A model generated the notes under the pieces. That model was not told where the DNA came from, did no database searches, and saw only the letters and a list, made by a program, of their open reading frames with translations. 64,000 bases of DNA from Perkinsela sp. CCAP 1560/9 (lineage: Eukaryota; Protista; Euglenozoa: Kinetoplastea), in the NCBI GenBank assembly GCA_965644495.1, contig CBFFSA010000001.1, forward strand, positions 310,001-374,000, written 5' to 3'. The position numbers and the translations under genes are program-made. Numbering within the stretch: position 1 is the stretch's first letter; every line of letters begins with the position of its first letter. Shown here in pieces: positions 22,251 through 59,611 of this stretch.

Positions 22251-22967
22251 TTTGTGTAAGTGTCGTTCGTATTACATGTTGATTATCCGTCGTAGTTGGT
22301 CCATCTCAGAACGCATGCTATAGAACTGTGCCGCGGGCCAAATTTGAAGAAGGTGTAGAAAACATGTTTTCGATGACCATGCAGCCCAAGATAAAGTGGA
22401 CGAGGGAGATACCCGTGCAGGATTGGGATTTTTGGGTACAGACCACCTATATTGCACCCACTTTCAAAATAATGATATGAATGCACTTAAATTCTTTCTT
22501 AACTTTACACACTTTACCTCACTTCCTCCTTAAAAATATTGCAGCATGCTTAAAGTTGGCCACCTTAGACGTCAAATGCCCATGCAGTAAGAAGCATTTT
22601 TCCTGTTAGATAATGATCGGAGGGAAAATATCGTCGTCTTAAAAATTCTGAAAACTGAATTTAAAATTTTGTACATTATTCTTTCAATCCGGGCATAAAT
22701 CGCAGACCAATAAATCAGTTACTTTTTGGAGAGAAAGGTGGGCGTCCGCTAATGTATTTCTCATAAAAAACTGACGATTTCATTAGAATTATTTCTTTTT
22801 CTTGAAAACAAATCCTGGAAAAAAAGTGAGATTTCACCAAGTTGGTTTTTATTTCATTTTTGCAAACATGCTCCCTGCAAATCACAAAACACATAAATGT
22901 CATATTTTCTCTTTTCGGTCTCTCTTTTACATCTTCCCCTTCTTTCACAGCAATTATCTCCCCCCAA

Positions 22968-23597
22968 ATGAATCCTAACGCTGCAGTCCTCTCTACAAGC
23001 CTTCACGAGACCGAGAAAGCACTTCCCCCGTCCGAACACCCCCTCGGGCGTTCCTGGGTGCTGTGGTACGCCGATCGCTCCCTACGTGACACCGAATCCC
23101 AGGAAGCCGTTCCCTGGGAGAAGTCACTGGTACAGATCTCGGACATTAACACTGTAGAGAAGTACTGGAGTACGGCTAACCACATCAAGCGCCCCAGTGC
23201 TCTGGTGTTTGGTGCCAAGTACTGTTTGTTTAAAAAAGGAATCGCCCCGGCGTGGGAGGACCCCACCAACCGCCTAGGGGGGCAGTGGATCGTGGTGCTA
23301 CACGACCACGAGGACATGGCGAGCCTGAACGCTGTGTGGGAAAGCCTGACGTTAAGCCTGATTGGGGAGTATTTCTATGATCCTTTGGAGGGGGTGTACC
23401 CGGATGTTGTGGATGCGGTCTGTGGGGTCGTGTTGACCAGGAAACGACACGGAACGCGTTTGGCGTTGTGGGTTTCCGGAGCAGCAGGTCCGGATGTGGT
23501 GGGAGCGATTGGGGAACAAGTAAGAAACATTCTAAGTCCAGTTCCCGTAAGTATGGAGTATGTCTCTCACAAGGAAAAATTGGAAGCTATGCAATAG
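22968..23597 (+). CDS. EIF4E: Cap-binding translation initiation factor eIF4E family member
   Basis: HPLxxxWxLWY, TVEKYW, LFKKGIAPAWEDPTNRLGGQW, VCGVV and LALW; first ATG at 22968. Confidence 0.95.
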   Translation: MNPNAAVLSTSLHETEKALPPSEHPLGRSWVLWYADRSLRDTESQEAVPWEKSLVQISDINTVEKYWSTANHIKRPSALVFGAKYCLFKKGIAPAWEDPTNRLGGQWIVVLHDHEDMASLNAVWESLTLSLIGEYFYDPLEGVYPDVVDAVCGVVLTRKRHGTRLALWVSGAAGPDVVGAIGEQVRNILSPVPVSMEYVSHKEKLEAMQ

Positions 23598-24160
23598 CTC
23601 AACTATAGAGGCAATGCTAGATTGATCGCACGCATATGAGGCAAACATGACAAATGTGTTCGCCAGTTGGGAAATTCGGCTGTAGTTCGTAACGATTCTA
23701 CTTTGCTGGTACTAGTTTTCTATAGTACACGATCTTCTACTTGATATACTACCTGGATACGCGTGTCTGGTTCACTAGTGAGTATACTAGTACACACGTT
23801 CGATTTTCTGACTCATATTCAGCAACATTTCGAAATCTTGTAAATTAAGTAAATAATTTATCCTTTGAATATTCTATTAATTTCATATTAGTAGCTTGCC
23901 TTTTATATATTTTTCGGTAGCGCTTTTTATGGACCGGGTCTGAAGGTGGTACGTATTATTCGAGTGAGGTGAAGATTGTAATAAAGAGCAATTCCCGCGG
24001 CAGGGAAGCGTCCACAGCTTCCCTGTCAGAATTCGGCAGAACAGGCAGTACCGAAACTTCGAACCTTTTATCTGAACCAGTTCGTGAAAAGAAAGATGAA
24101 TTCTCCGGTCTCACACTTCCGGCATCCCAAAAGAGTAATTCGAATTTATTAAGAACAAGT

Positions 24161-26611
24161 ATGACCTACACCACTGACAGGGAGGTTAATCTGAATGAAG
24201 GATACCAAGAGTCAGAAGCTCCTCTTCTACTGTTCATGCAATATGCCCCGGAAAAGGGAAAAGAGTTTCACGACGACGTCGAACTTAGTGCAGTTCCGAA
24301 AGAATATATTGCACAAGAAAATTTCTTGTTTTTTATTGTCGTAGAAACATTTCATCAGCGTTATGAGCAAGCCAAAGGATTTTTGTTGAGCATTGCCGAG
24401 CCCAGATCAAGAACCAGCTTTGTTCACGAATATCAGATTACACAAGAGAGTATAAGTTCGGCTATTCTTCATGGTTGGACGTTCAATGCGCTTCGTGAAC
24501 ATTGTTATTCCTTTTGCGCTCCTCACGCTTCAATAAATATATTTTTGGTTTTTATGGATCATTGTGTAAGATCTATTGCGAGTCTAAAGTTTGTCCTACG
24601 TGTCCCCAAAATTGAAAGAAAGGAGAGCAGTTCTGTGCCTCAAGCTACGCTCTTTAAAAGTAACCGTAAAATAAAAAAGGAAGTTTGCTACTTTTTGGAA
24701 TCAACGTCGGAACCTTTGCTAAATATGCTGCTAGATAGTGGTTCACCAAGCTCATCGTATTTCGATTCTGTAGCTCAAGAAGACACAATTCAGTTAAACG
24801 ATGGTACACTCAAGGCAGGCTTCTCCTTAGGTGTTACTCACGGAAAGGCAGGAGCAGCTAAAAAAGTGATAACCGGGCAGCATAATTTAGCTTTGGAGAA
24901 TTTGTATGATTTCATAAGCGACTCCATCACACGGAACATAGCGAACTTTATTCTGAGACCTCTCACAGTTCTTCGTTCGTATCAGCGCGAGGCGATGGAG
25001 TCCGTTTTCACCGGCACTCGAGTTCGTAGCGGCCTTATCGTCCTTCCATGTGGTGCGGGTAAATCGCTGACTGGGGTGGCCATTTCCTCCCGAATCTCGA
25101 AGCGGACACTTGTTGTATGTTGTAATCGAGTTTCTGTTTTGCAATGGAGGGATCAATTTCTGCGTTGGAGTTATCTAAGACCAGAGCAAATTAGCGTATT
25201 AACATCCACTTCACGCGAGGCTCCCGCTGATGTGGTGATTACAACATACACTATGCTTACTTTCGACGACACGCGAAGGAATGAAGCGACGAAAATAATT
25301 CTTACCAGCATGCTACAGGATGCATGGGGACTTGTTCTTTTTGATGAAGTACACATGGCTGCTGCAAACAACTTTCGAAATGTGGTAAATCTCGTTAAAG
25401 CACATTGCATGATTGGGTTGACGGCAACTTTATTGCGTGAAGACGATAAAATTGATGATTTGAATTATTTGATCGGTCCGAAATTGTACGAATGCTCAAA
25501 TCATGAACTTACGCGAAAGGGTTATATTGCTGAAGTAATGTGTGTAGAGGTACTGTGTCGATTTCCATCGTTATTTATGTCCTATTACCTCCGCTCTGAA
25601 AGTGACAGTGATCGTCGTAAACTATGTAATATGAATCCGGAAAAAATATGGTGCTGCCAAACAATTTTACGGTATCACGAAAACTTACAGCCCCCAGATA
25701 AAACTCTTGTCTTTTCGGATAGCGTGCCATGTCTGGAGTACTGTGCAAAACTTTTTGGGCGACCGTTTTTACATGGAGAAACTTCGGAAATAGAGAGGGA
25801 CAGTGTTATACAGTGGTTCAAGGCAAGCGAAACTGTGAACACACTTTTTCTCAGCCGAGTAGGTGATGCTGCACTGGATATTCCGGAGGCCAGTGTAATC
25901 ATACAGCTGTCTTCAAATTTTGGTTCACAAAGAACTGAAGTACAGAGATTGGGGCGCATACTCCGCATCAAATCCAATACCCGGTTGGCTTACTTCTACT
26001 CCCTGGTTACCCCCGATACCAAAGAAGCCGTTTTCTCCCGTAAAAGGCAGCGATTCTTGCTTAATCAAGGGTACGGCTACAAGATATTGTTCTCCAATGA
26101 TATTAGATCTGCTATACAGACCGCTGGCTCAAGCCCGACGGAGGTGAAGGAAATCAACAACGATGCCGCCTGCCTTGGTATTCCGCAATGGAAAGTGAGG
26201 TATGATCCAGATGGCGATCCGATATCCGTTTCTCCTGGAGAGTCACTCAACATTGAGAAAAAATACGCCTCAGGTAAGGAATTGGAAGATCAGCGCAGTT
26301 CCAGCATGTCAATCACCAAGAGTCCTTTACTGCTCCATGGTGGGATTCGATTGGGAAACTTTTTCAGATCACACTTCCACGAAGGTTCCTGCACTGATGA
26401 TTGTTTATCAGTTGCACTTCGCTTCACTCTGAGCGGCGAAAGAAATTTCTCTGCATTTTGCTTAAAGCATTATTATGTGTCATCCGTTGCAGAAAGTAAG
26501 GAATACAAAGAGCCTCGTCAGGGAAAGGCGAAGCTGATTGCTCCAACCACAAAAGCGTTACGACATCGTCAAAAACAAATAGATGCTTTAAGAAAACGAG
26601 GCTCCTCATAA
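24161..26611 (+). CDS. ERCC3: XPB/Ssl2/Rad25 DNA helicase
   Basis: LRSYQ, SGLIVLPCGAGKS, DEVH, GLTATLLREDDKI, IGPKLY and QRLGRILR. The frame is open from 23921; the first ATG is at 24161. Confidence 0.95.
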   Translation: MTYTTDREVNLNEGYQESEAPLLLFMQYAPEKGKEFHDDVELSAVPKEYIAQENFLFFIVVETFHQRYEQAKGFLLSIAEPRSRTSFVHEYQITQESISSAILHGWTFNALREHCYSFCAPHASINIFLVFMDHCVRSIASLKFVLRVPKIERKESSSVPQATLFKSNRKIKKEVCYFLESTSEPLLNMLLDSGSPSSSYFDSVAQEDTIQLNDGTLKAGFSLGVTHGKAGAAKKVITGQHNLALENLYDFISDSITRNIANFILRPLTVLRSYQREAMESVFTGTRVRSGLIVLPCGAGKSLTGVAISSRISKRTLVVCCNRVSVLQWRDQFLRWSYLRPEQISVLTSTSREAPADVVITTYTMLTFDDTRRNEATKIILTSMLQDAWGLVLFDEVHMAAANNFRNVVNLVKAHCMIGLTATLLREDDKIDDLNYLIGPKLYECSNHELTRKGYIAEVMCVEVLCRFPSLFMSYYLRSESDSDRRKLCNMNPEKIWCCQTILRYHENLQPPDKTLVFSDSVPCLEYCAKLFGRPFLHGETSEIERDSVIQWFKASETVNTLFLSRVGDAALDIPEASVIIQLSSNFGSQRTEVQRLGRILRIKSNTRLAYFYSLVTPDTKEAVFSRKRQRFLLNQGYGYKILFSNDIRSAIQTAGSSPTEVKEINNDAACLGIPQWKVRYDPDGDPISVSPGESLNIEKKYASGKELEDQRSSSMSITKSPLLLHGGIRLGNFFRSHFHEGSCTDDCLSVALRFTLSGERNFSAFCLKHYYVSSVAESKEYKEPRQGKAKLIAPTTKALRHRQKQIDALRKRGSS

Positions 26612-26823
26612 TACTTCGAAGTAGGTTTAACTGGTGTTTTCTTGAATTGCTCTTATTTTTTATAAATTATAAAAATAAATTATGATAATGAGTAAACTTT
26701 ATAAATAATTTCGGTAATCACTGTTGTTTATTCTTCTTGCAAGTACTTTGCAAGTATGATCTTTACTTAAATTCTGCATCTTGTAGTACCGGAGTAAATA
26801 AAAAAATCTTCGATCTTTTTGCT

Positions 26824-35346: not shown

Positions 35347-35875
35347 TAATTCATTTTCTGTTTTAAGACGCTGCGATTTACAAGATGACTGTTTCAATGG
35401 CTTTGAGTAGGGGTCAATGGTAGCTCAAGAGAACCCCAAGTTTCCGGAGCGCAAGGTGCAAAGAAACCTGAAGTTACTATCCTAAGAAGAAACACCAAAC
35501 TTTCGCTGACAACAGAATTACATAATCTGACAACCGCTGCAAACGTTGAAGGCTTACTCGTGCTTCGACTCCGGTGTGGAACATTCCTTTTTGGACTTCT
35601 TCTACATTCATCTTGTGCATGCATCTAATTAACGTGAATACCTTGTATCTCGTAAGTCGAGTATGCCTATCAGAGCTCACTCGCAGAAATATATACGCCT
35701 AGTTAAATAATATGAAAAGTAGTACGATATATTTCGTCACAAAAGTTTCCTGTTTACTTCGCAGTTCAGATTCTAACAATATCGCAATACCGTAGTACTT
35801 TAATATTTTTGATCTACGTCATTTCATGATCATCGCACTCGGCACATAGCACTACGTCTACGAGCCACTCCCAAA

Positions 35876-37732
35876 ATGCATTTATGGACCCCACTCCTTC
35901 TCCACTTTCTCTTCACGGTCAGCCCACCACGTCTCCTTACGCAGCCCCTCTCCCTTCCCCACGTCCACACCCTGGACTGCAGTCTCCCCCTCTGTCACCC
36001 CCCAGCGGGGGTGTCCCGACTTTTCTGCACCCTGTTCCGTCCTCTCTTTCGCTACTTTGGTCTCCCATGGTGTCAACACCCTCGACCCCCGGTTCGTGAC
36101 TTCCGTCGACGCTCCCATAGTGCTGACGCCGTCCCTTCCCGAACAAAAGGACACGCGTCGCCCTTGTTTCCTCCTCAGCAAGCAGCATCCCATCCGGACG
36201 ACCATAACCCGTTCACTACTTCACGTCCTTTTCCCCCTGGCGCAATGCCCTCCTCTTCCACCCTCTCCGGCCCTCTCACGAAGGTGGGTCTCTCCCCTAC
36301 CCCTTTAATTGCCAGTCTCCCCGATCTTCGTTCGTCCCTCTCTCGCCCGCTTCACCGCCTCTCCTCCTCTCATCTTCGGAAACGAGGAGCGCGAAAAAAA
36401 AAAGACAGGCGTCGCTGGCGCTCGCGTTCCATGACCGCGCTGGACGTGGAGCAAATCGCGGAGGCGCAAATTCGCCACGCCTCCCGGGAGAGTGGGATTG
36501 AGGATTTTGTGGCCTCCGCGGGGTCGTTGGCACAAAAACAGAGGCAGGGGCCGCGGCGTCCGCTGCCGATTGCACTCGCCCCCGAGGACCGGCACACCCA
36601 AAGTCGGTTTCCTCGACGTGTCCAGGCGTTGAATTTGACAACGATGGAGTCCGATATTGGGGGCGCGGGATGGCTTGTGGGGCAGCAGTCGCTGTTGGAG
36701 CGTGTGCGAGTGGCACTCTCACAGCCGGAGCAGTACCGTATTGTGCGAAGACACGGGAGTCGACAAACGGAGTACGTGTTGTGGACCTCAGAACGACCGT
36801 TGGCACGTTTTTTGACGTGGACCCCTCACTGTGATTATATTGCCTACTCCCGACGGATGCTACGGCATCGAGAAGAGAACAAGGAGGGGGAGGAGGAGGA
36901 GGAGGAGCACGATGATTCTCTGTCCTCTCCAATGCTTTCTCCTCAATCTCAGCCTCCGCATGAGGTTGTGCAACAGCTCCAGCGGAAGATACGCAACCAG
37001 GTGGCTCGATACGTGTTGGACTATGAGGGTAGTCTCTCTGTCCCGATAACAGTTCCCGTTGTGATTGAGGAACTTGGAATTGGTACGCTACAGGAATACA
37101 TTCCAGGGGATGTTCTCCCCTCCGATATGGACAGCTATGAAGAGCTTGAAAAGAGATTTTTTGGGTCGTTTCCTCCGACACTGGCTTCACCTCAGCCGAA
37201 ACATCAGATGGAAGAGATCTTCAGTTGTGAGTCCGCACAGTTCTTGTTCGTTCTTGATGCCCTGACAGGCATCACGAACCGAGATCCTCGTACGCTGCAA
37301 CACATCTACAAGGCAGCGGGGTCCGAATCTTACCCTTTGGCTAACGGGATAGGATCACGGCACAGCGGTTCACATGAATTCGTTATCGGATTCATCTCTT
37401 CCGACTTCGGACTGTGTTTCGACGGTATTTCCAACTTTCACCCTCTATTTTCTACTGCGACGTTCTATTCATCGTTTCCCCACATGCATACTCCGTTTTT
37501 GCCAAGAGTCCGTCGATATCTACAAAGTGCCCTTCCCTCCGCCATAGATACGCTGCGCTCTCACTTAGTAAACACAAAGGATCCTATGATGGAGACCTAC
37601 ATGGAAGATCTTCAGCACGCTGCGAAATGTCTTAGGGAGGGCGCGGAAAAAGAAATGACGCCCATTGAAATTATGCGCAAATGCTTAGCTACCGGAGTCG
37701 TTTCATCAACACTGAGTTTTCTTGGGTGGTAG
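35876..37732 (+). CDS. Divergent PI4K-II-like protein (probable pseudokinase) with a low-complexity N-terminus
   Basis: 'GTLQEYIPG', 'VLDALTGITNRD', 'SDFGLCF' and 'FPHMHTPF' align with PI4K-II subdomains. The true start is uncertain. Confidence 0.6.
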   Translation: MHLWTPLLLHFLFTVSPPRLLTQPLSLPHVHTLDCSLPLCHPPAGVSRLFCTLFRPLFRYFGLPWCQHPRPPVRDFRRRSHSADAVPSRTKGHASPLFPPQQAASHPDDHNPFTTSRPFPPGAMPSSSTLSGPLTKVGLSPTPLIASLPDLRSSLSRPLHRLSSSHLRKRGARKKKDRRRWRSRSMTALDVEQIAEAQIRHASRESGIEDFVASAGSLAQKQRQGPRRPLPIALAPEDRHTQSRFPRRVQALNLTTMESDIGGAGWLVGQQSLLERVRVALSQPEQYRIVRRHGSRQTEYVLWTSERPLARFLTWTPHCDYIAYSRRMLRHREENKEGEEEEEEHDDSLSSPMLSPQSQPPHEVVQQLQRKIRNQVARYVLDYEGSLSVPITVPVVIEELGIGTLQEYIPGDVLPSDMDSYEELEKRFFGSFPPTLASPQPKHQMEEIFSCESAQFLFVLDALTGITNRDPRTLQHIYKAAGSESYPLANGIGSRHSGSHEFVIGFISSDFGLCFDGISNFHPLFSTATFYSSFPHMHTPFLPRVRRYLQSALPSAIDTLRSHLVNTKDPMMETYMEDLQHAAKCLREGAEKEMTPIEIMRKCLATGVVSSTLSFLGW

Positions 37733-38388
37733 TCCAGGCCAGTGGAAGCTCCTTTTAAAAGCTTCTAAATTCTACCTCGTAAACTAGAATTTTGCGTAAC
37801 TTGTTTTCATAGACTTGCTTTACTAGTTTTTAGATTCTACTAGAGTATTTTATAGTTTTTTCTGAATTTTGTCATCCTATTGCGGTAGAGTATTAAACGT
37901 GTAAAGTGCTACGATTCTCCAGAATTTAACCTTTCACACGCCACACCTCTCCATCTTGTGCATGGTTGGTTCTATCATATGGATACTGGTTTGATCAACC
38001 CTGTCGACCGCAATCGGCATTATTCCCATTAACTTATTCAATCTTATCCATTTCGTTTCGCTTTTTTCTCTTCTCAACACATTCAAACGCAACGTGTTAC
38101 GCCCTATCACATAAAAAACATCCGCTTTCCTCTACAACCTATACCCTTCACTTTTCTACAACACGTCCAGCCACATTTCCAACGTAACCTTAAAAAAGTT
38201 AGCATAAAAAACAAAAGAAAAGAATTTAATCCTAAAAAACAGGCTTCACAGAAACCTTAAAACCTTACAAATAAAAATACAATAATATATAATACAATAA
38301 AAAAGAAACGACTTTACACGAACCTTCCTTTTTTTCACAACAACAAAACACTTCCTCTCCCCTTACCTACCCTCTCTCCCCCACCCCC

Positions 38389-39315
38389 ATGACCACCGCC
38401 CCCTCCCCCTACCCCACCTGGATGAACTTCCCCGCGGGCACCCTTGCCGGGGCCACCGCCTGGGCCCTCATCCACCCCCTCGACATCATCAAAGTCCATG
38501 TCCAGATGCGCGCGGAGGCCAAGGCCGACACGGGCCTGGCCTCCGTCGTGCGGGCTATCCTCAAGGAGCGCGGGCCCGCGGGGCTCTACGACGGGCTAAG
38601 CGCGGGGGTCTCGCGGCAGCTGGTGTACGCGACCGTGCGCCTGGGGGGCTACGATGTGTTCCGAGACGCCATCGTGCGCCGTCGTGCCGCGGAGGGGGGG
38701 GTGCCGGTGGCCACGTTCGGGGATCGCCTGGTGGCGGGGGCGCTGAGTGGGGGGTTTGCGGCCTACCTGAGTTGTCCGGTGGAGGTGGCGATGGTGCGGA
38801 TGCAGGCGGATGGGTCGGGACCGGCGGGGGAACGGAGGGGGTATGCGCATGTGGGGGATGCGTTGCGTCGGATTGCGACGGAGGAGGGGGTGAGGACGTA
38901 TTGGCGGGGGTCGACCCCGACGGTGGTGCGGGCCACCGCGGTGGGGGTGACCCAAGTGGGGTTTTATGATCAGTGTAAATCGTGGCTGGTTCAGAGTGGG
39001 TATTTCGCGCCGACCTCCGTGTCCACGTTTGTAACATCCTCCCTGATTACGGGGGTGGTTTATTCTTTTCTTACGATGCCGATTGAGACGGTGAAAATTC
39101 GTATGCAGAATCAAAAGCCACAGGCGGACGGTTCGCTGCGTTATCGTAATATGGCACAGGCGTTAGGGAATGTTGCCCGTGTGGAGGGCGTTTCTTCCCT
39201 TTGGCGAGGCTATGTTCCGTATTACACTCGTTGTGGTTTACATACATTGAGCTGCTTTTTTGTTTTGGAGCAATGTAAAGCGTTTTTGACCTGGAGTTAT
39301 GCCCCGAAAATGTAG
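38389..39315 (+). CDS. Mitochondrial carrier, 2-oxoglutarate/malate or dicarboxylate-tricarboxylate type
   Basis: Three Px[DE]xx[KR]-like signatures; 'GLSAGVSRQLVYATVRLG', 'VRMQADG' and 'RRGY...ALRRIATEEG'. Confidence 0.92.
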   Translation: MTTAPSPYPTWMNFPAGTLAGATAWALIHPLDIIKVHVQMRAEAKADTGLASVVRAILKERGPAGLYDGLSAGVSRQLVYATVRLGGYDVFRDAIVRRRAAEGGVPVATFGDRLVAGALSGGFAAYLSCPVEVAMVRMQADGSGPAGERRGYAHVGDALRRIATEEGVRTYWRGSTPTVVRATAVGVTQVGFYDQCKSWLVQSGYFAPTSVSTFVTSSLITGVVYSFLTMPIETVKIRMQNQKPQADGSLRYRNMAQALGNVARVEGVSSLWRGYVPYYTRCGLHTLSCFFVLEQCKAFLTWSYAPKM

Positions 39316-42404: not shown

Positions 42405-43271
42405 ATGGCTCTCGTAAAGTTTAACACGCTGGTAAAGTTTAACACTCTGGTAAAGTTTATTTTTTGCAGCATACAAGAATTAATCTTTTTTGGTGGTGCA
42501 ATGTCAAAATCTGTGTCTTGGAAGTATTCTTACATGCATCAGGCCTTATTTGTGTGGTTCTCACTTTTCTTCTGCGCCGACGAAGTTGGATACGTGAATC
42601 GAGCAGCCAAAGTCGATGCTAGATTATTTCCGCAAGATACGAAGCTATGGAAATTTATTGAAAACTGGAAAACCCAACCCAAAGGATGGGTTCTACCGAA
42701 CGCAAAGCAACGAAGCGCTGCTTCTGTTTGTTCATGGGAGGGAATATTATGTGATTCATCGGGTATTGTCCGTACCTTGGATTGTACCGATAAGGGTCTT
42801 GAAGGAAATATCACACTTGTATACCTTCCTGACAGTTTGCGTCAGCTGCACATCGGTCGAAACAAATTTACAGGGATATTAGACGTAGCTGATTTACCCC
42901 CTCTCATTAGTTCCTTTTCTTCACATTATAACTTACATTACGGCGGAATTGATCTTTCTCTTCTACCTCCCCCAACAGAGACGCTGCGTCTTCAAAATAA
43001 TAAATTATCTGGCTCACTCATCTTTTCTTCCCTTCCAAAACTTATTAGAAAGATAGATTTGAGTCGTAATTGCTTTAGCGGCTTACTTTCTTTGGAACAT
43101 CTTCCACAGTCTCTCCGATACTTATATCTGGCGCATAATAATTTTTCTGGACGAATAGTCTTTGGAAAATGGTTTCAAAATGCCGATATTTCCGTTACTT
43201 TGGAGGGAAATCAGTTAAGATGTAATTCGGCACCTGATGGAGTCTTCTTTGGTACGCAGCAAGAGTCTTGA
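42405..43271 (+). CDS. Leucine-rich repeat protein, possibly secreted
   Basis: 'CSWEGILCD' cap and LPxxLxxLxLxxNxFSG repeats; hydrophobic leader if translation starts at about 42501-42534. Confidence 0.88.
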   Translation: MALVKFNTLVKFNTLVKFIFCSIQELIFFGGAMSKSVSWKYSYMHQALFVWFSLFFCADEVGYVNRAAKVDARLFPQDTKLWKFIENWKTQPKGWVLPNAKQRSAASVCSWEGILCDSSGIVRTLDCTDKGLEGNITLVYLPDSLRQLHIGRNKFTGILDVADLPPLISSFSSHYNLHYGGIDLSLLPPPTETLRLQNNKLSGSLIFSSLPKLIRKIDLSRNCFSGLLSLEHLPQSLRYLYLAHNNFSGRIVFGKWFQNADISVTLEGNQLRCNSAPDGVFFGTQQES

Positions 43272-43553: not shown

Positions 43554-44303
43554 ATGGGTTTGCGATACTTGGCCAAAGTCATCTTTGCCAATAGTTGTAC
43601 GATTCAACAGCTTTCTTTACTCATGGCTGATTCAGATGTGGTTCGAAGCGGTAAAGTACGCGGTACAACTGTTCCTGTAGAATACGAATTGTCTCGGCTA
43701 GTTTCAAATATCTCAAATCCACACAAGAGTTGGACAACTCACAATACAGTCGAGAAATGGCAGGGTGTAATTTTCGACAATGAAATAAACGCTGTACACT
43801 CTATACGATGGGGTCGTGATCCAAAAACAAATCCTTTTTACTTCACTCCAGAATATTGTGGATCTATTCTTTGGGAATATTTATCGGAAGGTCTCGTGCT
43901 TTTTGATGTGGCGTTCAACGCCCTAGAAGGGCACGTCCCTTTGGCTAAACTTCCTTCTACTTTGCAACGAATGTACGTTCAGGTAAACAAACATATAGGT
44001 CCTATTGATCTGCAGAATCTCCCATGCTTCCTAACGGAGCTGAATTTGAGCTTTAACGACTTTTCTGGTTCTGTTGCCTTTAATCGCCTTCCTCAAAGCC
44101 TGGAAATTCTCCTACTTCATTCAAATAGTTTTCACGGGTCTCTTGATCTGACCCACCTCCCTCCTTCCCTTCGTTTTTTGAATTTGGAGGACAACTGTTT
44201 CGAAGGAGATGTTGATCTTTCTCTTTTGAACGACAAACTTGATTTACGTCTTCCGCGGAATAAAGATCTGAGAGCGCATGGCCTGCGCTGTCAGCCCCAA
44301 TAA
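43554..44303 (+). CDS. Leucine-rich repeat protein
   Basis: 'SW...KWQGV' cap and LPxSLxxLxLxxNxFxGxxDL repeats. Confidence 0.88.
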   Translation: MGLRYLAKVIFANSCTIQQLSLLMADSDVVRSGKVRGTTVPVEYELSRLVSNISNPHKSWTTHNTVEKWQGVIFDNEINAVHSIRWGRDPKTNPFYFTPEYCGSILWEYLSEGLVLFDVAFNALEGHVPLAKLPSTLQRMYVQVNKHIGPIDLQNLPCFLTELNLSFNDFSGSVAFNRLPQSLEILLLHSNSFHGSLDLTHLPPSLRFLNLEDNCFEGDVDLSLLNDKLDLRLPRNKDLRAHGLRCQPQ

Positions 44304-47111: not shown

Positions 47112-47387
47112 ACAGACACAGTTTATTCCTTGTATCTCAACCAAAACGACATGCTAAGTTTTGATGCGTTTTTTATGGACTCAAGACTAACTTTACCTCC
47201 TACACCTTTACCTACACTGCATTTTATAAATTTTACTACCGCCTGTGTATACCACTGTATTTTACACAACAATAGAAATCCCGTCCAACCTCTAATAATA
47301 CTATTTCAACGGGGTAAAACCTTTTTATATAGCGTAATTCAAGCATCACATACACTATCCCATCCTTTTATATACCTCACCTCACGC

Positions 47388-48308
47388 ATGGGCAGCTCAA
47401 ACCGCTCGTATGGGAACGATTCAAGACATGACTCTCGTCGGGAGAGGCGCCGGGAGACCCGTAATGGTTCACTCGACCGTCGCGAAACCCACCGCAGCCG
47501 GGAACGGCGCGACTATGACTACTCGCAAAGAAGACGCGATGACCGAAGTCCTCGTCGTGATGCAAAGTCAGGCACGAAGGAGTACGATGAACGACGGAGA
47601 CACGACCCACGCAGCGCTGAGCGATACGGCAATAGCGATCGAGGCACCGGAGAGCGATATTCAGAGGCGCGCTATCCAGCTTCCCGCCGGGAGAGGTCTC
47701 GAGAGCCCGTTTCACGTGACACACGGAGAGGGGGGGGGAGCCCCGTACGTGGGGGTCGTTGGGAGGGAGATCGAATGAAACCCCAAAGAGACGCTTCCTC
47801 ACCAACACCGAAGAGACGTCATGTTTCGCGAAAAGAAGACCCCGTACGCTGTGAGAGACTGGAAGAATATCCGTTCTTAGATCCGGAAAAGGCGGTGGTG
47901 CTTGCCGGAAGCTCACTTGCGGCCTATCATAAAAGCTTACACAACCGGCTGTATCTGGGGTGTTTGGGTACACAGCTCACGCTGGACGAACTACAGGATG
48001 CGCTCTCCACGTATGGGAACGTGAAAAACATAGGCATGGCCTATGAAAACGATGATTCAGAGGACACTCCACAAAGTAAGGGGTACTGTTTCGTAGATTT
48101 CGACGATCCCACTCCTGTGGCTCGGATATGCCACATGAAACCAGGCACTTTCCGCATCAAAGGGAGGATAGTAAAATTTATGCAACCTCGAATGAATGCC
48201 GAAGCGGCCGATAGTCAACGGGTCATGACTTATGAAGATGCCGTACGCCTCACACAAGCGGGAATCATTGAACTTACCAGTACGGACGCTGTTTCATTGG
48301 GTTCATAA
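47388..48308 (+). CDS. RS/RD-rich RRM protein (PUF60-like RRM), probable splicing factor
   Basis: Arg/Asp/Ser-rich N-half; RNP2 'RLYLGCL' and RNP1 'KGYCFVDF'. Confidence 0.78.
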   Translation: MGSSNRSYGNDSRHDSRRERRRETRNGSLDRRETHRSRERRDYDYSQRRRDDRSPRRDAKSGTKEYDERRRHDPRSAERYGNSDRGTGERYSEARYPASRRERSREPVSRDTRRGGGSPVRGGRWEGDRMKPQRDASSPTPKRRHVSRKEDPVRCERLEEYPFLDPEKAVVLAGSSLAAYHKSLHNRLYLGCLGTQLTLDELQDALSTYGNVKNIGMAYENDDSEDTPQSKGYCFVDFDDPTPVARICHMKPGTFRIKGRIVKFMQPRMNAEAADSQRVMTYEDAVRLTQAGIIELTSTDAVSLGS

Positions 48309-48719
48309 GGCAAGCTCATGAGTATTTCACCATATTTTCCTCGTTGTTGTCATGTGAACATTCCAATTATGATACAGTATTCTAATGTTTGGACGGAAGG
48401 CAAAGCACTTAGCGCGAATCTTTGCCTTATACAGTATAGGCACCCCAAATACGTTGCTTGTGTTTTCTCAGCCCAATGAATCTTTTTTCTTTGACCATTG
48501 ATCGTTGAGTGCGATTTTAGCGTACAGTATGCAGTGTATTTCACAAATAAATCTGAACTTTACTATATCTAAACCTTACTTTTGTCATGGCTTGTTCTAA
48601 CACGTATCTCTATGTAGTTTACGTGTCTCTGTACAGCATATTGTATGTATCGCATTATAATAATTCCATAAGTTTTCATAAGTTTTAGCAAAACACTTTC
48701 ACTCCTATTTTTTCACAAG

Positions 48720-50573
48720 CTGTGTAGGGCAAAATTACTCAGCGGGATTGCAATTGCATCTACCCTACGTGAAAACGTCAAAAATCTTATCTCCACGCAC
48801 CGAGCCCAATGCCTCGCCTCTAAGATCTCCCTCCCTCCCCCGGGCCTCGCCGTGGTCCACGTTGGGGAACCACCCGATGCCCAGTGCTACCTCAGGGCCA
48901 CAAAAAAGTGCGCCGCTTACTGCGGCATCCGTGTCCGGTCGTACCCCCTCCCCGCGAATGCCTCCGCGGCCCAGCTCTATGCCCAGCTCTCCATACTCAA
49001 CCATGATCCCTCCACCCATGGTATCCTTCTCCTTTCTCCCCTTCCCCCTTCCCTGATTTCCCCTACCACCTTCTCCGCCATCTCCCCTGCCAAAGACGTG
49101 GACGGGGTACACTACGTAAACACAGGAAAGCTATGGTGTGACACCACACCGTTGTCTTTTTCCTCTTCTTATCCTTTTGTACATACTTCCGGTTTATTTG
49201 ATGCTGCTTCCTCCTCTTCTTTTTCCTCGATCACTTCTAATTGTACCACTGAACAGGAATTCTCCTTGGATTCCTCTTTTTCTAAAAATAAGCGGCGTTC
49301 CTTCGAAAAAGGATTCATCTCTGACGCCTCTACCTCTGAAAAAAGGTTCAACTCTGATTCACTTTCATCCAATCATAAATTACCGCCCTCTTGTCCCTCT
49401 GAAAACACCAACCTCTCCTCTAAAAAGGACATGTATGTGTCTTCCTCAAACCCCTCGTTATCCTCTAATGAACAACAAGCTAAAACCTCCTTTTTATCCC
49501 CTCCGAACACCTCGTTATCCACTGGAAATCAAAACGAACCAAAAGAAACCTCCTTTTCATCCCCTCTAAACCCCGCATTATCCCCTGAAACCCAAAACGA
49601 ACAACAAGCAGCAACCTCCCTTTCTTCCCCTACAGTCCCCTCGTTATCCACTGGAAACCAAAACGAACCAAAAGAAACCTCCTTTTCATCCCCTCTAAAC
49701 CCCGCCTTACCCTCCGAAACCCAAAACGAACAACAAGCCGCAACCTCCTTTCCATCCCCTCCAAACCCCACATTACCCTCCGAAACCCAAAACAAACAAC
49801 AAGCCGCAACCTCCTTTCCATCCCCTCCAAACCCCGCATTACCCTCCGAAACCCAAAACAAACAACAAGCCGCAACCTCCTTTCCATCCCCTCCAAACCC
49901 CACATTACCCTCCGAAACCCAAAAACAACAACAACAACAACACGAAATCTCCTTTTCTTCCTCCTCATCTTCCCCATCTTCCTCCTTTTCTTCCCCATCT
50001 TCCCCATCTCCCCCATCTCCCTCACCTTCATCTCCCTCCCCATCACCCCCCCTCCCCCCCCTCCTCCCCTGCACCCCCCTCGCGATCCTCACCCTCCTCA
50101 CCGCCCACCACATCCTCCCCCCCTCCCCCCCCTCCCCCCACGTCGTCGTCCTCAGCACCTCCCCCGTCGTCGGCCTCCCCCTCGCACGCCTCCTGCTCCG
50201 CGCCGCCCTCCCCGCGGTCTCCCTCGTGGACCCCACGAGTGCGGGCGCCATGGGGTGGGCGTCCCGCGGGGACGTGCTGGTGTGCGCGGCGGGGGTACCG
50301 CAAGGGGTGGGGAGGGGGTGGGTGAAGAGGGGCGCGGTGGTGGTGGATGTGGGGGGAGGCAGGGGGAGGGGGGAGGGGGAGGGGGGGACGGGGGGGAGGA
50401 TCAAGGGAGGAGGAGGGGAGGTGGTGATGGAGGAGGTGGTGGAGGTGGCGTCGTGGGTGAGTCCGGTTCCGGGTGGGGTGGGTCCGGTGACGGTGGGGGT
50501 GTTGATGGGGAATGTGTGGAGGGCGTATTGTGCGCAGTGTGGGGTGGGGAGGGGACACAGGGGGGTGGAGTAG
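48720..50573 (+). CDS. folD: FolD-like methylene-THF dehydrogenase/cyclohydrolase homologue with an insertion of about 300 aa
   Basis: 'AKLLSGIAIA', PGLAVVHVG, HGILL.SPLP, KDVDG, PCTP, DVLVCAAG, VKRGAVVVDVG and SPVPGGVGPVT. There is no clean ATG (see findings). Confidence 0.85.
   Translation: MCRAKLLSGIAIASTLRENVKNLISTHRAQCLASKISLPPPGLAVVHVGEPPDAQCYLRATKKCAAYCGIRVRSYPLPANASAAQLYAQLSILNHDPSTHGILLLSPLPPSLISPTTFSAISPAKDVDGVHYVNTGKLWCDTTPLSFSSSYPFVHTSGLFDAASSSSFSSITSNCTTEQEFSLDSSFSKNKRRSFEKGFISDASTSEKRFNSDSLSSNHKLPPSCPSENTNLSSKKDMYVSSSNPSLSSNEQQAKTSFLSPPNTSLSTGNQNEPKETSFSSPLNPALSPETQNEQQAATSLSSPTVPSLSTGNQNEPKETSFSSPLNPALPSETQNEQQAATSFPSPPNPTLPSETQNKQQAATSFPSPPNPALPSETQNKQQAATSFPSPPNPTLPSETQKQQQQQHEISFSSSSSSPSSSFSSPSSPSPPSPSPSSPSPSPPLPPLLPCTPLAILTLLTAHHILPPSPPSPHVVVLSTSPVVGLPLARLLLRAALPAVSLVDPTSAGAMGWASRGDVLVCAAGVPQGVGRGWVKRGAVVVDVGGGRGRGEGEGGTGGRIKGGGGEVVMEEVVEVASWVSPVPGGVGPVTVGVLMGNVWRAYCAQCGVGRGHRGVE
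49480..49945 (+). repeat. Coding minisatellite of about 7 units of 63-66 bp (21-22 aa, TSFPSPPNPALPSETQNKQQAA)
   Basis: Tandem units are directly visible inside the FolD insertion. Confidence 0.9.
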
Positions 50574-51818
50574 TCGTGTACCGTGCGGAACATGAATGCG
50601 GGATCCGTTAATTACGGGACATCTCCTTTTGGGGTTAACAGTGTCCAGTGTTTTATGGAGTGATTCAGACAGAAAAAGCACACTCTTCACGAAAGATGAT
50701 GGGGTGAGACAGTATAAGGTCCTTATACCTGCGTTCACCGCAGGCCCGAAAAAGGGATTCTCATGTACTGCCGTGCGTATTATTCCCCACATTTTGCTCG
50801 ACAACTTTTTTCTCTTTAATGTTAAAGATTTTCGGACAAGGAAAAACGGTTAGCAGGGCCTCAGAAGAGTCATTAGGTCGCAGTTTTTCATACTGTCGGA
50901 TAAAATTAAGACATGTTCGTTCGTGCGGCAAGACAAGGAAGAGCTTTTTCTATGAAATCTATGATAGACGGTGTTTTGATGATTCCTCCTTATACTTGTG
51001 ATGTACCTTGCAATGTTCATTTTTATGAGCGTAGTACATGTGAGGAGCTGCGGGTGAAACCTCGCGAAACCTCAGTGAAACCTCGTGAAACTTCGGTGAA
51101 ACCTTGTTGAAACCTCGGTGAAACCTCGTGAAACCTCGGTGAAACCTCGCGAAACTCAGCTAAAATCCCTCAAAGCCATTCTCAAGTGTTTGTCGTCCAA
51201 CAACTCAGCAAACAGAATAGAAATACAGCAATACTCAGTGCTGGATAAATTCATTTTAACGTCTTTCAAAAATCGTTTCAACAACGCCACAACCACGACT
51301 ACACAGGCTTTGGTTCTCTTCATTGAAATTTTTAAGAGATCTACATTAATGTATGTGGCATATTCATACTGATGATTCACGCACAATGATCCATACATGA
51401 AAACCAACGCAATCTGCACCGCATCTTTTATTTTTCAAAAGGGTCAGAAGACGTGAAAAAAGAGTCAGCTAGCCACTTTTCCGGGAGTGGCCAGCTGGCC
51501 ACTTTTCCAGGGGATGGCCCGATGGCCATTTTTTCAGAAGCCTTCAGAAGCCACTTTTTAGAAGAAGATTGGCATTGTTTTGTCAACCGTAGCCGCCATG
51601 AGGTCCACGAATTTTCTGATTGATACGACGAAAGTGTTTTTGTATAATCCAGGCATAAAGGGGCGAGGGAGATACCAAGCAACAGATGTAGCAGATTCCC
51701 ACTGAAAAGAAATCGTATTTCCCTGCACGAAGTTGACTCCGAGCTAGCAAGTGCATAGGTAGACATTTCTCGTGCAGGAGATACGACTTCTTTTCAGTGG
51801 GAATCTGCTACATCTGTT

Positions 51819-53646: not shown

Positions 53647-53709
53647 TCTGTTGCTTGGTATCTCCCTCGCCCCTTTATGCCTGGATTTTTAAAATTACTA
53701 TTTTTAAAA

Positions 53710-53816
53710 TGTGACAGATAACTAGGGGGGGTGGTCGACGAAAAAAAAAACGAAGTGCCAAATAGTGGCTGATAAATAGGGGGGGGGGGGAGGGGTGACT
53801 GATAACTGGGGTACAG
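53710..53816. mobile_element. Solo right end, same family as 16100-16216
   Basis: GACAGATAACTAGGGGGG repeats, ending GGGGTACAG|TA. Confidence 0.65.
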
Positions 53817-54952: not shown

Positions 54953-55182
54953 TATGTATAATTACAAAGTTTATAATATGTTCATAAACAATGTTTAATA
55001 TAAACATCCCGTTTTCAATGGTTTATTTATTTAATTTTTTTGCTCTTGTTGGCAACTACGTGAACTCAATTTTTTATATTTTTTAATACATTAAAAAAAA
55101 TATTACATCTGAGAGATTCTGTAAAATGTTTACAGATTCTGTAAAATTGATAGATCAATGATTTTTTAACATACAACTATGT

Positions 55183-56790
55183 ATGACAATTGTTGCATTA
55201 AGTAGCGCTGGATTAGCTCAAAATTTAGAGGCTTGCCTTGCCGATGTCTCTCATCACATAGCCAGTGGGCGTAATTGTGTTCTTCGATGCCTGGACACAG
55301 CCTACGTCAAGGACGATTGCCAAGGACTGCATCCGACCGTTCATTTCGCTCTTGAAGAGCAGTTGCTCCGGCTGTTTCCGACAGTCTACGGAGTTTGCGA
55401 CACCAACCCTAGAGTAGATTCTTTGGGATCTATTCTGTTTCTCTACCGCAGTAGATACCCGTGCGTTGTCATGGGTCGAAATCAGGTTTCCTGGATGGAA
55501 ACAAGACATTTGCACCCAGAAGAAATGCATTTTAACGATGGCGCCAGTACAAGTCCACTTGTGTTGCGTCGTATTAGCGGTGGTGGTTGTGTGTATCACG
55601 ATTCCGGGTGTCTTTGCTTTAGTATTATTACCTCTCGATCTAAATACAATCCTGCGAGAAGCCTTGGTGTCGTACGCCAAGCAGTTGAAAAGTTAATTTA
55701 CACACAATTGAAACAAAACGGAAAGAGCGAGTCAAGCCTTGATATAACGAGCACGCCACGAAGCGATTTATTTGTTGCGGGAAAGAAAATTACTGGTAGT
55801 GCTATGCGCATTGTACACAGAGCGGCCTATCATCACGGAACCATCCTTGTACACTCGGACCTCGCAAAAGTTAGTGAATCCCTACGGCCCCTCTTTCAAA
55901 ATCAGTCCTCTTGTGAGGTGCAGTCCAAGGGATCTCCCTCTGTCCGAAGCTCAGTCACCAATCTGGTTCAGGCTTCTGGGAATTCTTTAGACTGCACGCC
56001 CCAGTCCGATCTCTTTCTCTTGACCAGTGAACTCGTACAGGAAGCCTTTTGGACGGAATACGGGTCGAATGGAAGTTACTGCGCCTATGATGTATACGAC
56101 CATGTTGCTCCAGGGAAGAACCTTTTCACAGCACTTAAAACAAATTGCAAGACACAGAATGTACAAGGAGAAATTCAAAAAGTGGATTCTGGGGAACATT
56201 CATGCGCTGATATACACCATCGAATAAAAGAGTTGGGCTCTTGGGAATGGATTCGGGGTGCAGGAGCTGTGTTCCAAGTTTCCTTATGTAGTAAACTGAA
56301 TTTGAAGGGTCAAAGGGAAGACTCTCTTTGGCAGAAGATATTACATAATCGTGGGATAGAAAAAACATCTTTTCACGTTCGTTCTGGTTACATCGAAGAC
56401 GTATCTTTTAGTATCCGATCAACCTCAACCAATTCAACGACATTCTTTGAGGAGATTGCCATGCTCACATCATCTGCACTTTCCGGGGTCGGTTTCGGCG
56501 CTAAATTTATTCTACGTGATGCATGTCAACGACTAGCACTCGCCATCTTCCGAAGCGATCAATTGAGTTCACATGTAACACAGCAGATCCAAAGTTTTTC
56601 CCTACTTCCGGAGAATGAGGAAACTATTTATTCTGACATGAATACTCTTCTCATGGAAGCTGGTGTGGATGTTCGTGACAGTACCGACGCTTCTCGATTC
56701 TTACTTTTTGTTGCAGCAATTTTTCCAGCCATTTGTGACGCGGTCGATTTTAAGAGAGCTTACTTTGGAAAAAGGGAAAAAAAATTATGA
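55183..56790 (+). CDS. Lipoate-protein ligase / lipoyltransferase (LplA family)
   Basis: VVMGRNQ, RRISGGGCVYHDSG, KKITGSA, HHGTIL, SVRSSVTNL and SWEW. Confidence 0.92.
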   Translation: MTIVALSSAGLAQNLEACLADVSHHIASGRNCVLRCLDTAYVKDDCQGLHPTVHFALEEQLLRLFPTVYGVCDTNPRVDSLGSILFLYRSRYPCVVMGRNQVSWMETRHLHPEEMHFNDGASTSPLVLRRISGGGCVYHDSGCLCFSIITSRSKYNPARSLGVVRQAVEKLIYTQLKQNGKSESSLDITSTPRSDLFVAGKKITGSAMRIVHRAAYHHGTILVHSDLAKVSESLRPLFQNQSSCEVQSKGSPSVRSSVTNLVQASGNSLDCTPQSDLFLLTSELVQEAFWTEYGSNGSYCAYDVYDHVAPGKNLFTALKTNCKTQNVQGEIQKVDSGEHSCADIHHRIKELGSWEWIRGAGAVFQVSLCSKLNLKGQREDSLWQKILHNRGIEKTSFHVRSGYIEDVSFSIRSTSTNSTTFFEEIAMLTSSALSGVGFGAKFILRDACQRLALAIFRSDQLSSHVTQQIQSFSLLPENEETIYSDMNTLLMEAGVDVRDSTDASRFLLFVAAIFPAICDAVDFKRAYFGKREKKL

Positions 56791-56955
56791 AGTTAAATTC
56801 GGTGAATTTACTCACCGTAGTTGTTTTATATCAAGGTTGAGAACCTTTCATTGGTGAAATCGATAAGGGTTATTTTAGAAAAACCTTCTGCGTTCAAAAT
56901 CAATCTTCATATCTTTATGTCCCCCAAGGTCTATCAATTAAGCAAAATCTAGTAA

Positions 56956-57522
56956 ATGGTAAATTATGATAACATTCAGGAGGCGGATAGATTAGTCAAA
57001 CATTCCATTCATGAGCCACTTCCGATGACACCTATCGTTGCTCAGCGTATACATTCCCTTCCAGATCATCAAACATCATCTGTGCCTTTTACAGACTATG
57101 ATACGGCTTTGTCTACGCCGCAAAACACTTTCCCACCTCAAGTGTATTGTATTCGTCATGCTCGAATTCGGTATACCTCAGAGTGTGGGTTAGTAAAACC
57201 ACTTACAGAATATTATGCTTGCAAGGCTTCCTCAAGCTGTCTTCGAGGAGGGCCAGTGGAAGATGTAGGCGCAATCTTACAGAGGGATGTTAATAGTGAA
57301 ATCTTGTGCAGTCAGCATTTTCAAATTAGAAGCGCGCGTTACGTTCGAAGAAATACTGAGGGTACTGGATATCAGTGCTCTTTTCCCCATTATTGCATTT
57401 TGAAAAGTAACGAACCTGCTAAGTCATATGACTCTGCCCTATCATACATGGCCTCCGATGACACGGACGTTCCAGGCGCGAAGCCTACTGATCATCTGTG
57501 TAACTTTTTTCAACAGCAATAA
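56956..57522 (+). CDS. Protein with two C-x2-H-x3-R-x15/16-C-x5-C motifs
   Basis: 188-aa ATG ORF with a duplicated Cys/His pattern. Confidence 0.65.
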   Translation: MVNYDNIQEADRLVKHSIHEPLPMTPIVAQRIHSLPDHQTSSVPFTDYDTALSTPQNTFPPQVYCIRHARIRYTSECGLVKPLTEYYACKASSSCLRGGPVEDVGAILQRDVNSEILCSQHFQIRSARYVRRNTEGTGYQCSFPHYCILKSNEPAKSYDSALSYMASDDTDVPGAKPTDHLCNFFQQQ

Positions 57523-57760
57523 AGAACTTTACCTAAAAAGGGCATACAAATAACTCGCTCTTATGCTGAATATTTCAGGTTCGAAAATGTGTGGCCACAT
57601 AAACTTGTCACTTAAATTTTCTGCTGTATGTTCTATGATTTTTTTTGAAGTATTCTTTTCACGAGTAAACACGCAATTGGGCTATTGAAGACAATTTATA
57701 TTTATCTTCTTATTATTTCTCATTATTTTCTTATTAGTATTTTAATCAAAACAAAACTCA

Positions 57761-58285
57761 ATGGGGCCATATTTGCGTGAGTATGAAATTACGGGACGTC
57801 GCCAGCCGTCGACCGCCAACCGTGATCCGGAAATTTATGCTATGCGAATCTTCGCTCCGAACTACGTGGTCGCAAAATCTCGTTTCTGGTATCACTTACG
57901 CTCTTTGAAGAGCATTAAGCGCACCAGTGGTGAGCTTCTGGGGTGCAAGGAAATTCCTGCGTCCAAGCCAGGCAAAGTAAAAAACTATGAGGTCTCGATG
58001 AAGGTGTACAACCGCCGTGTCGGCTTTGTCAACATTCGCAAGGAATTTCGTGACGTCTCTCGTGGGAGTGCTGTGTCGCAGGCGTACATCGATACTGCCT
58101 CGCGCAATCGTGGAAAGTATTTTGACATCAACGTTGTTGGAGTGAAGAGCGTTCACGATAAGGAGGTACGCAACAAGAACATGCAGCAATTTGCTCAAGT
58201 TGATGTCAAATTTCCGTTGAAGCATACGTTGCCAAAGTTACCAAAGGGTCTCAAGTTTTCTACCATGCGCCCTAAATCGTACTAA
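57761..58285 (+). CDS. RPL18A: 60S ribosomal protein L18a (eL20)
   Basis: 'MRIFAPNYVVAKSRFWY', 'VKNY', 'KEFRDVSRGSAVSQAY' and 'KFPL'. Confidence 0.95.
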   Translation: MGPYLREYEITGRRQPSTANRDPEIYAMRIFAPNYVVAKSRFWYHLRSLKSIKRTSGELLGCKEIPASKPGKVKNYEVSMKVYNRRVGFVNIRKEFRDVSRGSAVSQAYIDTASRNRGKYFDINVVGVKSVHDKEVRNKNMQQFAQVDVKFPLKHTLPKLPKGLKFSTMRPKSY

Positions 58286-58527
58286 GTGAAGAAAGGAAAA
58301 ATTGTGGAAGTATGAGAAGAAAAGGTGTAACTGGATGAAAGTGGGTGTTTGCAATTTTTCTGCAAAACAAATTAGTAAAACATTTCGCGTAAATGAAGTT
58401 TAATATTTCTAACGTGATACAAGGATTGAGCTAGTGGCTTTTATTACTGTCAATGTCATCGGAGGTCACTACGTAACCACAACCTTCTATTATTTTTTGA
58501 GTATCAACGTACTGTATTTCTCCTCCC

Positions 58528-59088
58528 ATGAAACCGAACTCGGGTTCTACCCCCTCATCAAAACCTCCCCCGATACTTGAACGCGTCTCTCGATTAGAAA
58601 AAGGGTTTGCAGCAGGGAAGAAGACCACTTCCGCCGAGCGGGCGTCACCCTACCGAGGTATCAGTGAGTCCCGCACCCCAACGCTCTCTCAAATACGCGG
58701 CGCCTCCCAGACCCCGGCGCCGCTACGGAGTAATTTACCTCATTTACGTCATGCACCTCGAGGGGCGCAACGACCAAATTTTCTTACGCAAAAAGCGCTG
58801 AGTTCTCCTTTGTCTTCAAACATGACGGCCCCACGGGATGAGACCGCCTCGTTTGGGGACCCGGAGCTCTCGGGACGAGCTCCCCGGGCGTGGGGCTCGC
58901 AGAAAGGCTCCTCCTCGTGCTCTTCGGAGTACTCCTCTCTGGAATACAATATGAAAAGAGTGCGTGAGAATTTTCTGGTGAATTGGGGACTAAAACCTCT
59001 TGTGTCGGGCTTCTCGCTTGCGCTGGGGATGTCCGCAGGGTACGGTTTCTTTGATTTTTTGATTAAATACAAGCAGAATATGGGTTAG
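58528..59088 (+). CDS. Hypothetical tail-anchored membrane protein
   Basis: Disordered Ser/Pro/Arg-rich N-terminus; C-terminal Gly-rich TM segment 'PLVSGFSLALGMSAGYGFFDFL'. Confidence 0.6.
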   Translation: MKPNSGSTPSSKPPPILERVSRLEKGFAAGKKTTSAERASPYRGISESRTPTLSQIRGASQTPAPLRSNLPHLRHAPRGAQRPNFLTQKALSSPLSSNMTAPRDETASFGDPELSGRAPRAWGSQKGSSSCSSEYSSLEYNMKRVRENFLVNWGLKPLVSGFSLALGMSAGYGFFDFLIKYKQNMG

Positions 59089-59611
59089 TTTACCCAGTAG
59101 TTTAGTATGCACGCATTGTCTTTTCGCTCACGTGGATGATTTGCGTGTGGTTGTGTCTAAAACTTCTAAAGTTGATAATAAAGACATTGTACGGTTTCCA
59201 CGTGGAAATAAGATTTTATTGTCTCTTGTGTGTATAAGGTGCTTATAGAAGCCGCTGCTTATTCACATTTGTAACACTGAATAGAATCCAGTGACGTTTC
59301 TGTTGGTTGTATTAGCGTCATATTGATTCTAATACTTCCAAAGTCATCTGGTTACAAATGCTCAAAATTTGTAATGCACGATATGTTTTTTCGATAATCT
59401 TTGTGAAATTGGCATTGAGTAACTCTCCTTCTTGCAATCAAAAAAATGTGTTTTGTAGGTACATAACCCTTTGTTAACTTTTGGGTAACTAACATACCAA
59501 AAATACAACCCATACGAAATGCACTACTTACAGAATGCGTACAGGCTCCTAGTTGGGTACTTTGCGGACCCACGTTCACCGCTCCACTTTTAGAATTTCC
59601 AAGCTCCTCCC

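Follow-up and report, generated by a model that had tools for sequence, protein, structure and literature searches.

Why do short GC-rich islands inside the genes of this locus read C-rich and then G-rich along one strand, when the surrounding DNA carries no such imbalance? The initial annotation described at least six such islands and proposed fixed bidirectional replication origins as their source, with break or resection hotspots and selection for mRNA structure as alternatives.

The region analysed comprised the stretch in question (the window, 64 kb) and the next 200 kb (segments L001-L020), in total 264 kb, or about 1.3% of a 21-Mb genome held in 110 contigs. These 264 kb run from a plus-strand gene cluster through a repeat-bearing convergent switch into a minus-strand cluster and include no divergent strand switch. 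Coding sequence accounts for 63% of the DNA, and the background has 43% GC and no skew at fourfold degenerate sites (C 0.221 vs G 0.220). The genes of the window are intronless, co-oriented and eukaryotic, encoding eIF4E, XPB, NOL10, a carrier, an RRM protein, methylene-THF dehydrogenase, L18a and a kinesin; Rfam and tRNA scans returned no matches. Because the carrier has its top named match in Perkinsela sp. CCAP 1560/4 (64% identity), with further prokinetoplastid transcriptomes coming next, the gene order ENTH-RRM-dehydrogenase-L18a-kinesin is common to the window and another Perkinsela-like contig, and a transcript end at 35,795 matches the published spliced leader (PMC5601477), the source genome is, as judged from sequence, that of a Perkinsela-like kinetoplastid, in line with the kinetoplastid-like character originally suggested. 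By analogy with its relatives, the organism probably lives inside an amoeba.

A class of C-to-G islands within genes

Switches were scored with a two-sided z that requires both a C excess on the left and a G excess on the right over 400-bp arms, against a null obtained by shuffling G/C labels (200 shuffles; 64-kb maximum with a mean of 2.2, a 95% level of 2.65 and a highest value of 2.85). The 264 kb contain 11 C-to-G switches at z>=3, five of them at z>=6, and no G-to-C switch at z>=3; the one-sided "G-to-C peaks" of an initial scan turned out to be edges of islands. When peaks were picked on fourfold-site GC alone, blind to skew, 20 of 23 were C-to-G, and one of the other three is a shoulder of the 50.2 kb island. 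Across the whole genome, C-run..G-run patterns outnumber G-run..C-run patterns by 262 to 71 at a distance of 200-230 bp and by 1197 to 208 at 400-430 bp (A/T control, 2611 vs 2239), these counts taking in overlapping matches and some repeat copies. The C-to-G island class is real, and its claimed polarity holds: reverse switches are nowhere near equally frequent.

The six centres named at the outset did not fare alike. Those at 23.1, 38.5 and 50.24 kb are strong and that at 36.4 kb is moderate, whereas 58.8 kb is borderline and 47.6 kb does not rise above the null. The skew persists at fourfold sites, with C/G counts of 15/4 left and 11/32 right at 23.1 kb (p=1.7e-4) and 73/4 left and 6/59 right at 50.2 kb (p=7e-28), and with p=8e-9 for the carrier island at 38.5 kb. 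The islands at 36.4 and 38.5 kb recur, at >99% identity, in contigs from independent runs of two studies, so that these are not assembly artefacts. Amino-acid composition fits the 47.6 kb site, which is the Arg/Ser/Asp-rich (RS-rich) low-complexity part of the RRM gene. As a general explanation, amino-acid composition, like codon bias, chance or an error of assembly, carries almost no probability and is refuted for the strong islands by the fourfold tests, the 11:0 polarity and the genome counts; in addition, all eight fourfold codon families shift in islands, ribosomal L18a has ordinary codons, and the runs agree.

All 11 strong centres lie within coding sequence, between 0.08 and 0.8 along the gene. 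Centres lean toward the 5' part of genes (mean 0.40 of gene length, p=0.04), and they occupy unidirectional clusters rather than cluster ends. The long gene-free gaps of the window contain no strong island. Spacing across a wider set of 20 islands ranges from 1.7 to 33 kb, and density amounts to one island per 10-25 kb. Islands, which measure 1-1.5 kb, probably number in the hundreds genome-wide; scaling up from 1.3% of the genome together with the pattern lists gives some 700-800 strong ones and as many as 2000 weak ones. A shared motif, for which the initial annotation proposed a search, was not visible by eye across the 11 centres, and neither shared sequence between sites, nor terminal repeats, nor an Rfam match marks them as a repeat, transposon or structured RNA.

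Table 1. Islands and associated features of the window (window positions; turning point, the place where C excess gives way to G excess)
Feature	Position	Strand	Remarks
Island, turning point ~23,115	22800..23600	.	Inside eIF4E gene (22,968-23,597, +); z=3.7
Spliced-leader trans-splice acceptor of the 35,876 gene	35795	+	Loose end of run X4 contig matches spliced-leader 3' end
Island, turning point ~36,380 (36,380-36,520)	35850..36900	.	z=2.9, moderate; fourfold-site GC 0.68
Island, turning point 38,504-38,560	37980..39000	.	In mitochondrial carrier gene (38,389-39,315, +); z=6.1
Candidate centre, 47.4-47.6 kb	47200..47900	.	z=2.0, not above null
Strongest island, turning point 50,237	48750..50575	.	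Methylene-THF dehydrogenase/cyclohydrolase gene; z=10.8
Ser/Pro-rich insertion, ~285 aa	49160..50060	+	Between the two enzyme domains of the dehydrogenase, in C-rich arm
Borderline island, turning point ~58,835	58466..59100	.	186-aa ORF (58,528-59,088, +); z=2.6; fourfold-site GC 0.62

The 36.4 kb island lies inside a 618-aa ORF without a Pfam match (35,876-37,732, +) and contains six strain differences at 36,334-36,538. The C-rich flank of the carrier island enters the 3' region of the preceding transcript (37,981-38,231: C 70, G 24); at its centre (38486-38499), run X2 shows three AT-to-GC differences in 14 bp, in a single low-depth contig that may be in error. The strongest island has a C-rich arm of ~1.5 kb and a G-rich arm of ~0.35 kb, and the insertion in its C-rich arm, which holds a 66-bp tandem repeat (49,470-49,941), is missing from the Perkinsela CCAP-type orthologue; a third dehydrogenase orthologue has 301 aa. 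The 5' end of this gene is unusual (48672-49431): the frame is homologous from ~48,732, and no in-frame ATG occurs from the stop at 48,669 to ~49,431, with a CTG found after a pyrimidine tract and AG at 48,720. A non-AUG start, an assembly error or decay would each fit.

Other features of the sequence are recorded here in their own right. A weak C-to-G turn (z=2.7) at 13300-14900 of the window has no long ORFs and may be a non-coding island. Also in the window are three short leucine-rich-repeat paralogues, apparently an expanded family (17048-17791, 42405-43271 and 43554-44303), a tandem repeat of 11/21 bp where genes are sparse, past the strongest island (51053-51159), and a 166-bp unit present as two tandem copies with 98% similarity, which separates the kinesin gene from its neighbour (61755-62086). 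Beyond it, near-identical ~5.2 kb tandem units and a scaffold gap fill the convergent switch (L002-L004, 18-36 kb past the window end), the units having no long ORFs and no Rfam match. Adjoining the switch, ~44 kb past the window end, is a G-rich block of 530 bp that is one-sided, containing short internal repeats and having no C-rich partner arm (L005:4150-4680), possibly a half-island cut by rearrangement, or a repeat. A 623-aa gene under a strong island (L019:4457-6328, minus strand) shows faint similarity (E=0.005) to a domain of the phage DNA adenine methylase-like kind. The pattern lists also contain dispersed non-coding, MITE-like repeat families with C-, G- and T-runs, at G000:C1:64860, 1099180 and 2290946 and at C1:65731, 432184, 551758 and 787927.

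Composition, ancestry and protein effects

On the strand 3' of the centre, fourfold G reaches 0.57-0.78 over the first 400 bp, against a background of ~0.21, while A, T and C each fall to ~0.1 (C 0.08-0.11); because the islands were chosen for their skew, these averages are somewhat inflated. The opposite side is the mirror image, which bears out the strand symmetry first described. Fourfold-site GC in islands is 0.7-0.94, and the symmetric GC gain is confined to ~200 bp around the centre. A/G twofold sites move to G (0.8-0.9 vs a background of 0.42) and C/T twofold sites, at 200-500 bp from the centre, to T (C 0.23-0.28 vs 0.41), that is, A-to-G and C-to-T on the same strand. Such a combined shift on one strand is the deamination pattern expected of exposed template. 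The rise of G at the expense of A, T and C on the strand 3' of the centre is seen within about 0.5-0.7 kb. The signal is greatest 200-400 bp from the centre; in gene orientation it has ended by 0.7 kb on the downstream side and by 1-1.5 kb on the upstream side, the upstream arm being the longer. In non-coding flanks the skew arises mainly from loss of the minority base. Synonymous sites, flanks and unrelated genes are all affected, as had been asserted. CpG is not enriched in islands (o/e 0.75, vs 0.73 for GpC), T does not exceed A on the G-rich strand (0.47 against an expected 0.54; 0.42 against 0.46), and, by motif scan, G4 motifs lie on the minus strand left of the centre and on the plus strand right of it.

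Relatives place these features in time. The island is absent, with flat third positions, from the carrier gene of three relatives and from the dehydrogenase gene of two; no relatives emerged from homologue searches with the eIF4E and LCAT-like island genes. In 48.5 kb and 38.6 kb of two Perkinsela relatives, no C-to-G site exceeds z=2.3, where the rate of the present genome predicts ~two each at z>=3, a small sample. Substitutions were polarised at first and second codon positions where relatives agree and this genome differs: left of the centres, 23 derived changes are to C and 4 to G, and right of them 17 are to C and 35 to G (left vs right, p=1.1e-5). Correspondingly, Pro makes up 17.8% of residues left of the centres (background 4.6%) and Gly 12.5% right of them (background 5.3%). 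Because the orthologues are flat, the derived changes polar and the Pro and Gly contents shifted, the islands are derived in this lineage, are directional and reach into protein sequence. The suggestion that the sites are long-lived thus stands within this lineage and fails beyond it, where orthologues have no island.

Candidate mechanisms

Transcription elongation, already considered insufficient in the initial annotation, can be set aside: skew is lacking in the background, and 86 genes outside islands reveal no trend from 5' to 3'. On the same genes, a gene-wide drift in codons from C at the 5' end to G at the 3' end is rejected. Polarity is equal in plus and minus clusters, which follows from the symmetry of the pattern and therefore cannot alone exclude a gene-linked cause. 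A general leading/lagging skew does not hold up either: the signal is gone beyond ~1 kb and comes with no T excess, and at 1.2-6 kb from the centres fourfold G and C are equal on both sides (p=0.61). Loss of repair genes is unsupported as a cause, for a genome search found five MutS-family loci, two UDG genes and three Y-family polymerases, all identified at family level.

The reading to which we give the greatest weight, at a probability of about 0.45, is that the islands are the focal, strand-biased substitution footprint of fixed bidirectional replication origins. The data call for a substitution process that starts at a fixed point and runs outward in both directions for <1 kb, pushing A, T and C toward G on the strand 3' of that point. 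The G-gaining strand would be the nascent leading strand, or the lagging-strand template, of forks leaving the centre, and the bias might be supplied by error-prone early synthesis or by damage to exposed template near initiation. The resulting GC- and G4-rich DNA may re-specify the site in a feedback, while the weak selection of an endosymbiont would let the bias overwrite proteins. One island per 10-25 kb is a plausible origin density. Against this reading stand the G-rich strand's want of a T excess, given that in L. major T skew switches together with G skew, the lack of long-range leading/lagging skew between sites, the opposite polarity of T. brucei nascent-strand origins (PMC13179062), the AT-rich initiation zones of L. 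major (PMC12890776), and the two relatives without islands, which must nevertheless replicate. Possible, and a little less secure, is the larger picture in which the lineage has several hundred to ~two thousand fixed intragenic origins (a rough extrapolation) that override protein constraint and perhaps fix themselves; they would be readable from sequence because initiation drives one strand hard toward G, and the trait would have arisen in one lineage because relatives with the same genes lack islands.

Internal divergent Pol II starts would yield the same polarity: short transcripts run both ways, and the displaced non-template strand is mutated or selected toward G, as happens at promoters in CpG islands; trans-splicing could allow genes downstream to be served by a start that lies within another gene. 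The arms equal in length the GC skew, typically 300-700 bp, downstream of human CpG-island starts, where it favours R-loops (PMC3787257), G/T-rich motifs mark kinetoplastid transcription start regions (PMC7511235), and the 5' lean of the centres and the longer upstream arm also suit such starts. However, 11 of 11 strong centres fall in coding sequence, where a start would truncate the gene, and the long gene-free gaps have no strong island. Read-through exists at the 36.4 kb island, as the run X4 RNA contig spans from the spliced leader at 35,795 across 36,380; T enrichment is missing, and a divergent strand switch in the CCAP-type relative has no G skew. We regard divergent starts as unlikely.

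To about the same degree unlikely are break or meiotic recombination hotspots, at which GC-biased conversion would raise GC while resection and repair synthesis add strand asymmetry. They would account for the high fourfold GC, fixation against protein constraint, lineage-specific positions and tracts of <1 kb; the genome carries a Spo11/TopoVI-A domain gene besides its MutS-family loci, the strongest island contains a repeat expansion, and strain differences are weakly enriched in islands (8/22 in 20% of the DNA, p=0.06; unpolarised and mostly from one island). Conversion alone, however, acts alike on both strands and should raise C along with G, and so cannot explain the depletion of C or the shift of twofold sites to T. 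Moreover, given the established mechanism, the strand exposed by resection lies 5' of the break, where cytosine damage would leave it C-poor, the opposite of the islands; nor is a shared motif visible at the centres. Three geometries remain compatible with the pattern, namely an origin, a divergent promoter and a resected break whose resynthesised strand is the G-rich one.

Selection for structure, either a 5'-C/3'-G foldback in the mRNA or DNA G4/i-motif pairs with a chromatin role, is improbable. Canonical G4 motifs do crowd the arms, and in three of the six islands folding is better than in controls shuffled locally (z -2.3 to -3.7), a lenient comparison because mononucleotides were shuffled. 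Pairing is only run-to-run, without specific inverted repeats, the islands are not conserved in orthologues, and hundreds of diffuse sites with radical amino-acid shifts suit mutation pressure better. The foldback offered in the initial annotation fails for the carrier island because its C-rich flank lies in the transcript of the previous gene. Very improbable are dispersed kinetochore or centromere units: the polarity is that of the L. major AcH3/J/KKT1 site and two Tet/JBP genes were found in the genome, but the islands are intragenic and recur every 10-25 kb, while kinetoplastid centromeres are single per chromosome (PMC7511235).

Comparison with known systems

Skew inversions at initiation sites are already known, including one per chromosome in a kinetoplastid. 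The remark that no description of such sharp intragenic switches was known from a kinetoplastid-like genome hence needs narrowing in view of the local switch of L. major (PMC7511235), and stands insofar as that switch is neither intragenic nor present in hundreds. Our search of a mainly open-access literature found nothing on dense, intragenic, near-saturated, protein-rewriting switches in Perkinsela, on Perkinsela with GC skew, or on skew at recombination hotspots. The choice of origins in kinetoplastids is disputed, with one per chromosome set against thousands, AT-rich against G4-rich sites, and opposite polarities between studies; the candidate sites can be called from sequence to ~100 bp and would therefore allow a direct test. 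Whatever the mechanism, the islands are an unusually strong case of local mutational bias rewriting proteins, Pro-rich before the turning point and Gly/Val-rich after it, and island genes will mislead phylogenetic and selection analyses.

Among kinetoplastid systems, T. brucei nascent-strand origins are intergenic, with poly(dA)/poly(dT) flanks and opposite G4 polarity (PMC13179062). The islands resemble them in being motif-free, with strand-polar composition and G4s near the centre, but do not share the intergenic position, the poly(dA) upstream and poly(dT) downstream, or the plus-strand G4 upstream, and their G/C polarity is opposite. The initiation zones mapped by single-molecule methods in L. 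major have AT-rich DNA and a mild deficit of coding sequence (PMC12890776), unlike the GC-rich, intragenic islands. GC-skewed CpG-island promoters likewise have a GC-rich island, a G-rich strand 3' of a point and arms of 300-700 bp; they are centred on transcription starts in a methylated genome, whereas the Perkinsela islands lie inside genes of polycistronic clusters.

Origins were ranked first because of three parallels. ORC sites and origins of P. falciparum are, like the islands, GC-richer than background, G4-linked, motif-free and situated in gene bodies (PMC10810204), although the passages located report no skew inversion and the GC is far lower than in the islands. Human constitutive origins show an excess of T>G, C>G and T>C in a ~1-kb window with a strand bias that inverts at the centre, a mutagenesis that builds local GC, skew and G4s and undergoes rapid evolutionary turnover (PMC9645720). 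The likeness extends to flux type, window and inversion, leaving skew direction aside; human origins are tied to CpG islands and promoters and are seen as an average over thousands of sites, whereas single Perkinsela loci are near saturation, rewrite proteins and are not enriched in CpG. In L. major, finally, the one early origin per chromosome coincides with a KKT1-bound centromere at AcH3/base J/KKT1 cluster boundaries and shows a highly local negative-to-positive G-skew switch, with reverse-strand G4s upstream, forward-strand G4s downstream and a T-skew switch, independent of transcription layout and without broad replication skew (PMC7511235). The islands differ in number (at least 11 in 264 kb), in lying in coding sequence instead of at a transcription-unit boundary, in being GC-rich, and in switching G only. 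The candidate sites would act like an origin-type skew jump while lacking the features that define either of the kinetoplastid origin types described so far, and with the L. major early origin they share, in another kinetoplastid, the local polarity, the G4 layout and the lack of broad skew.
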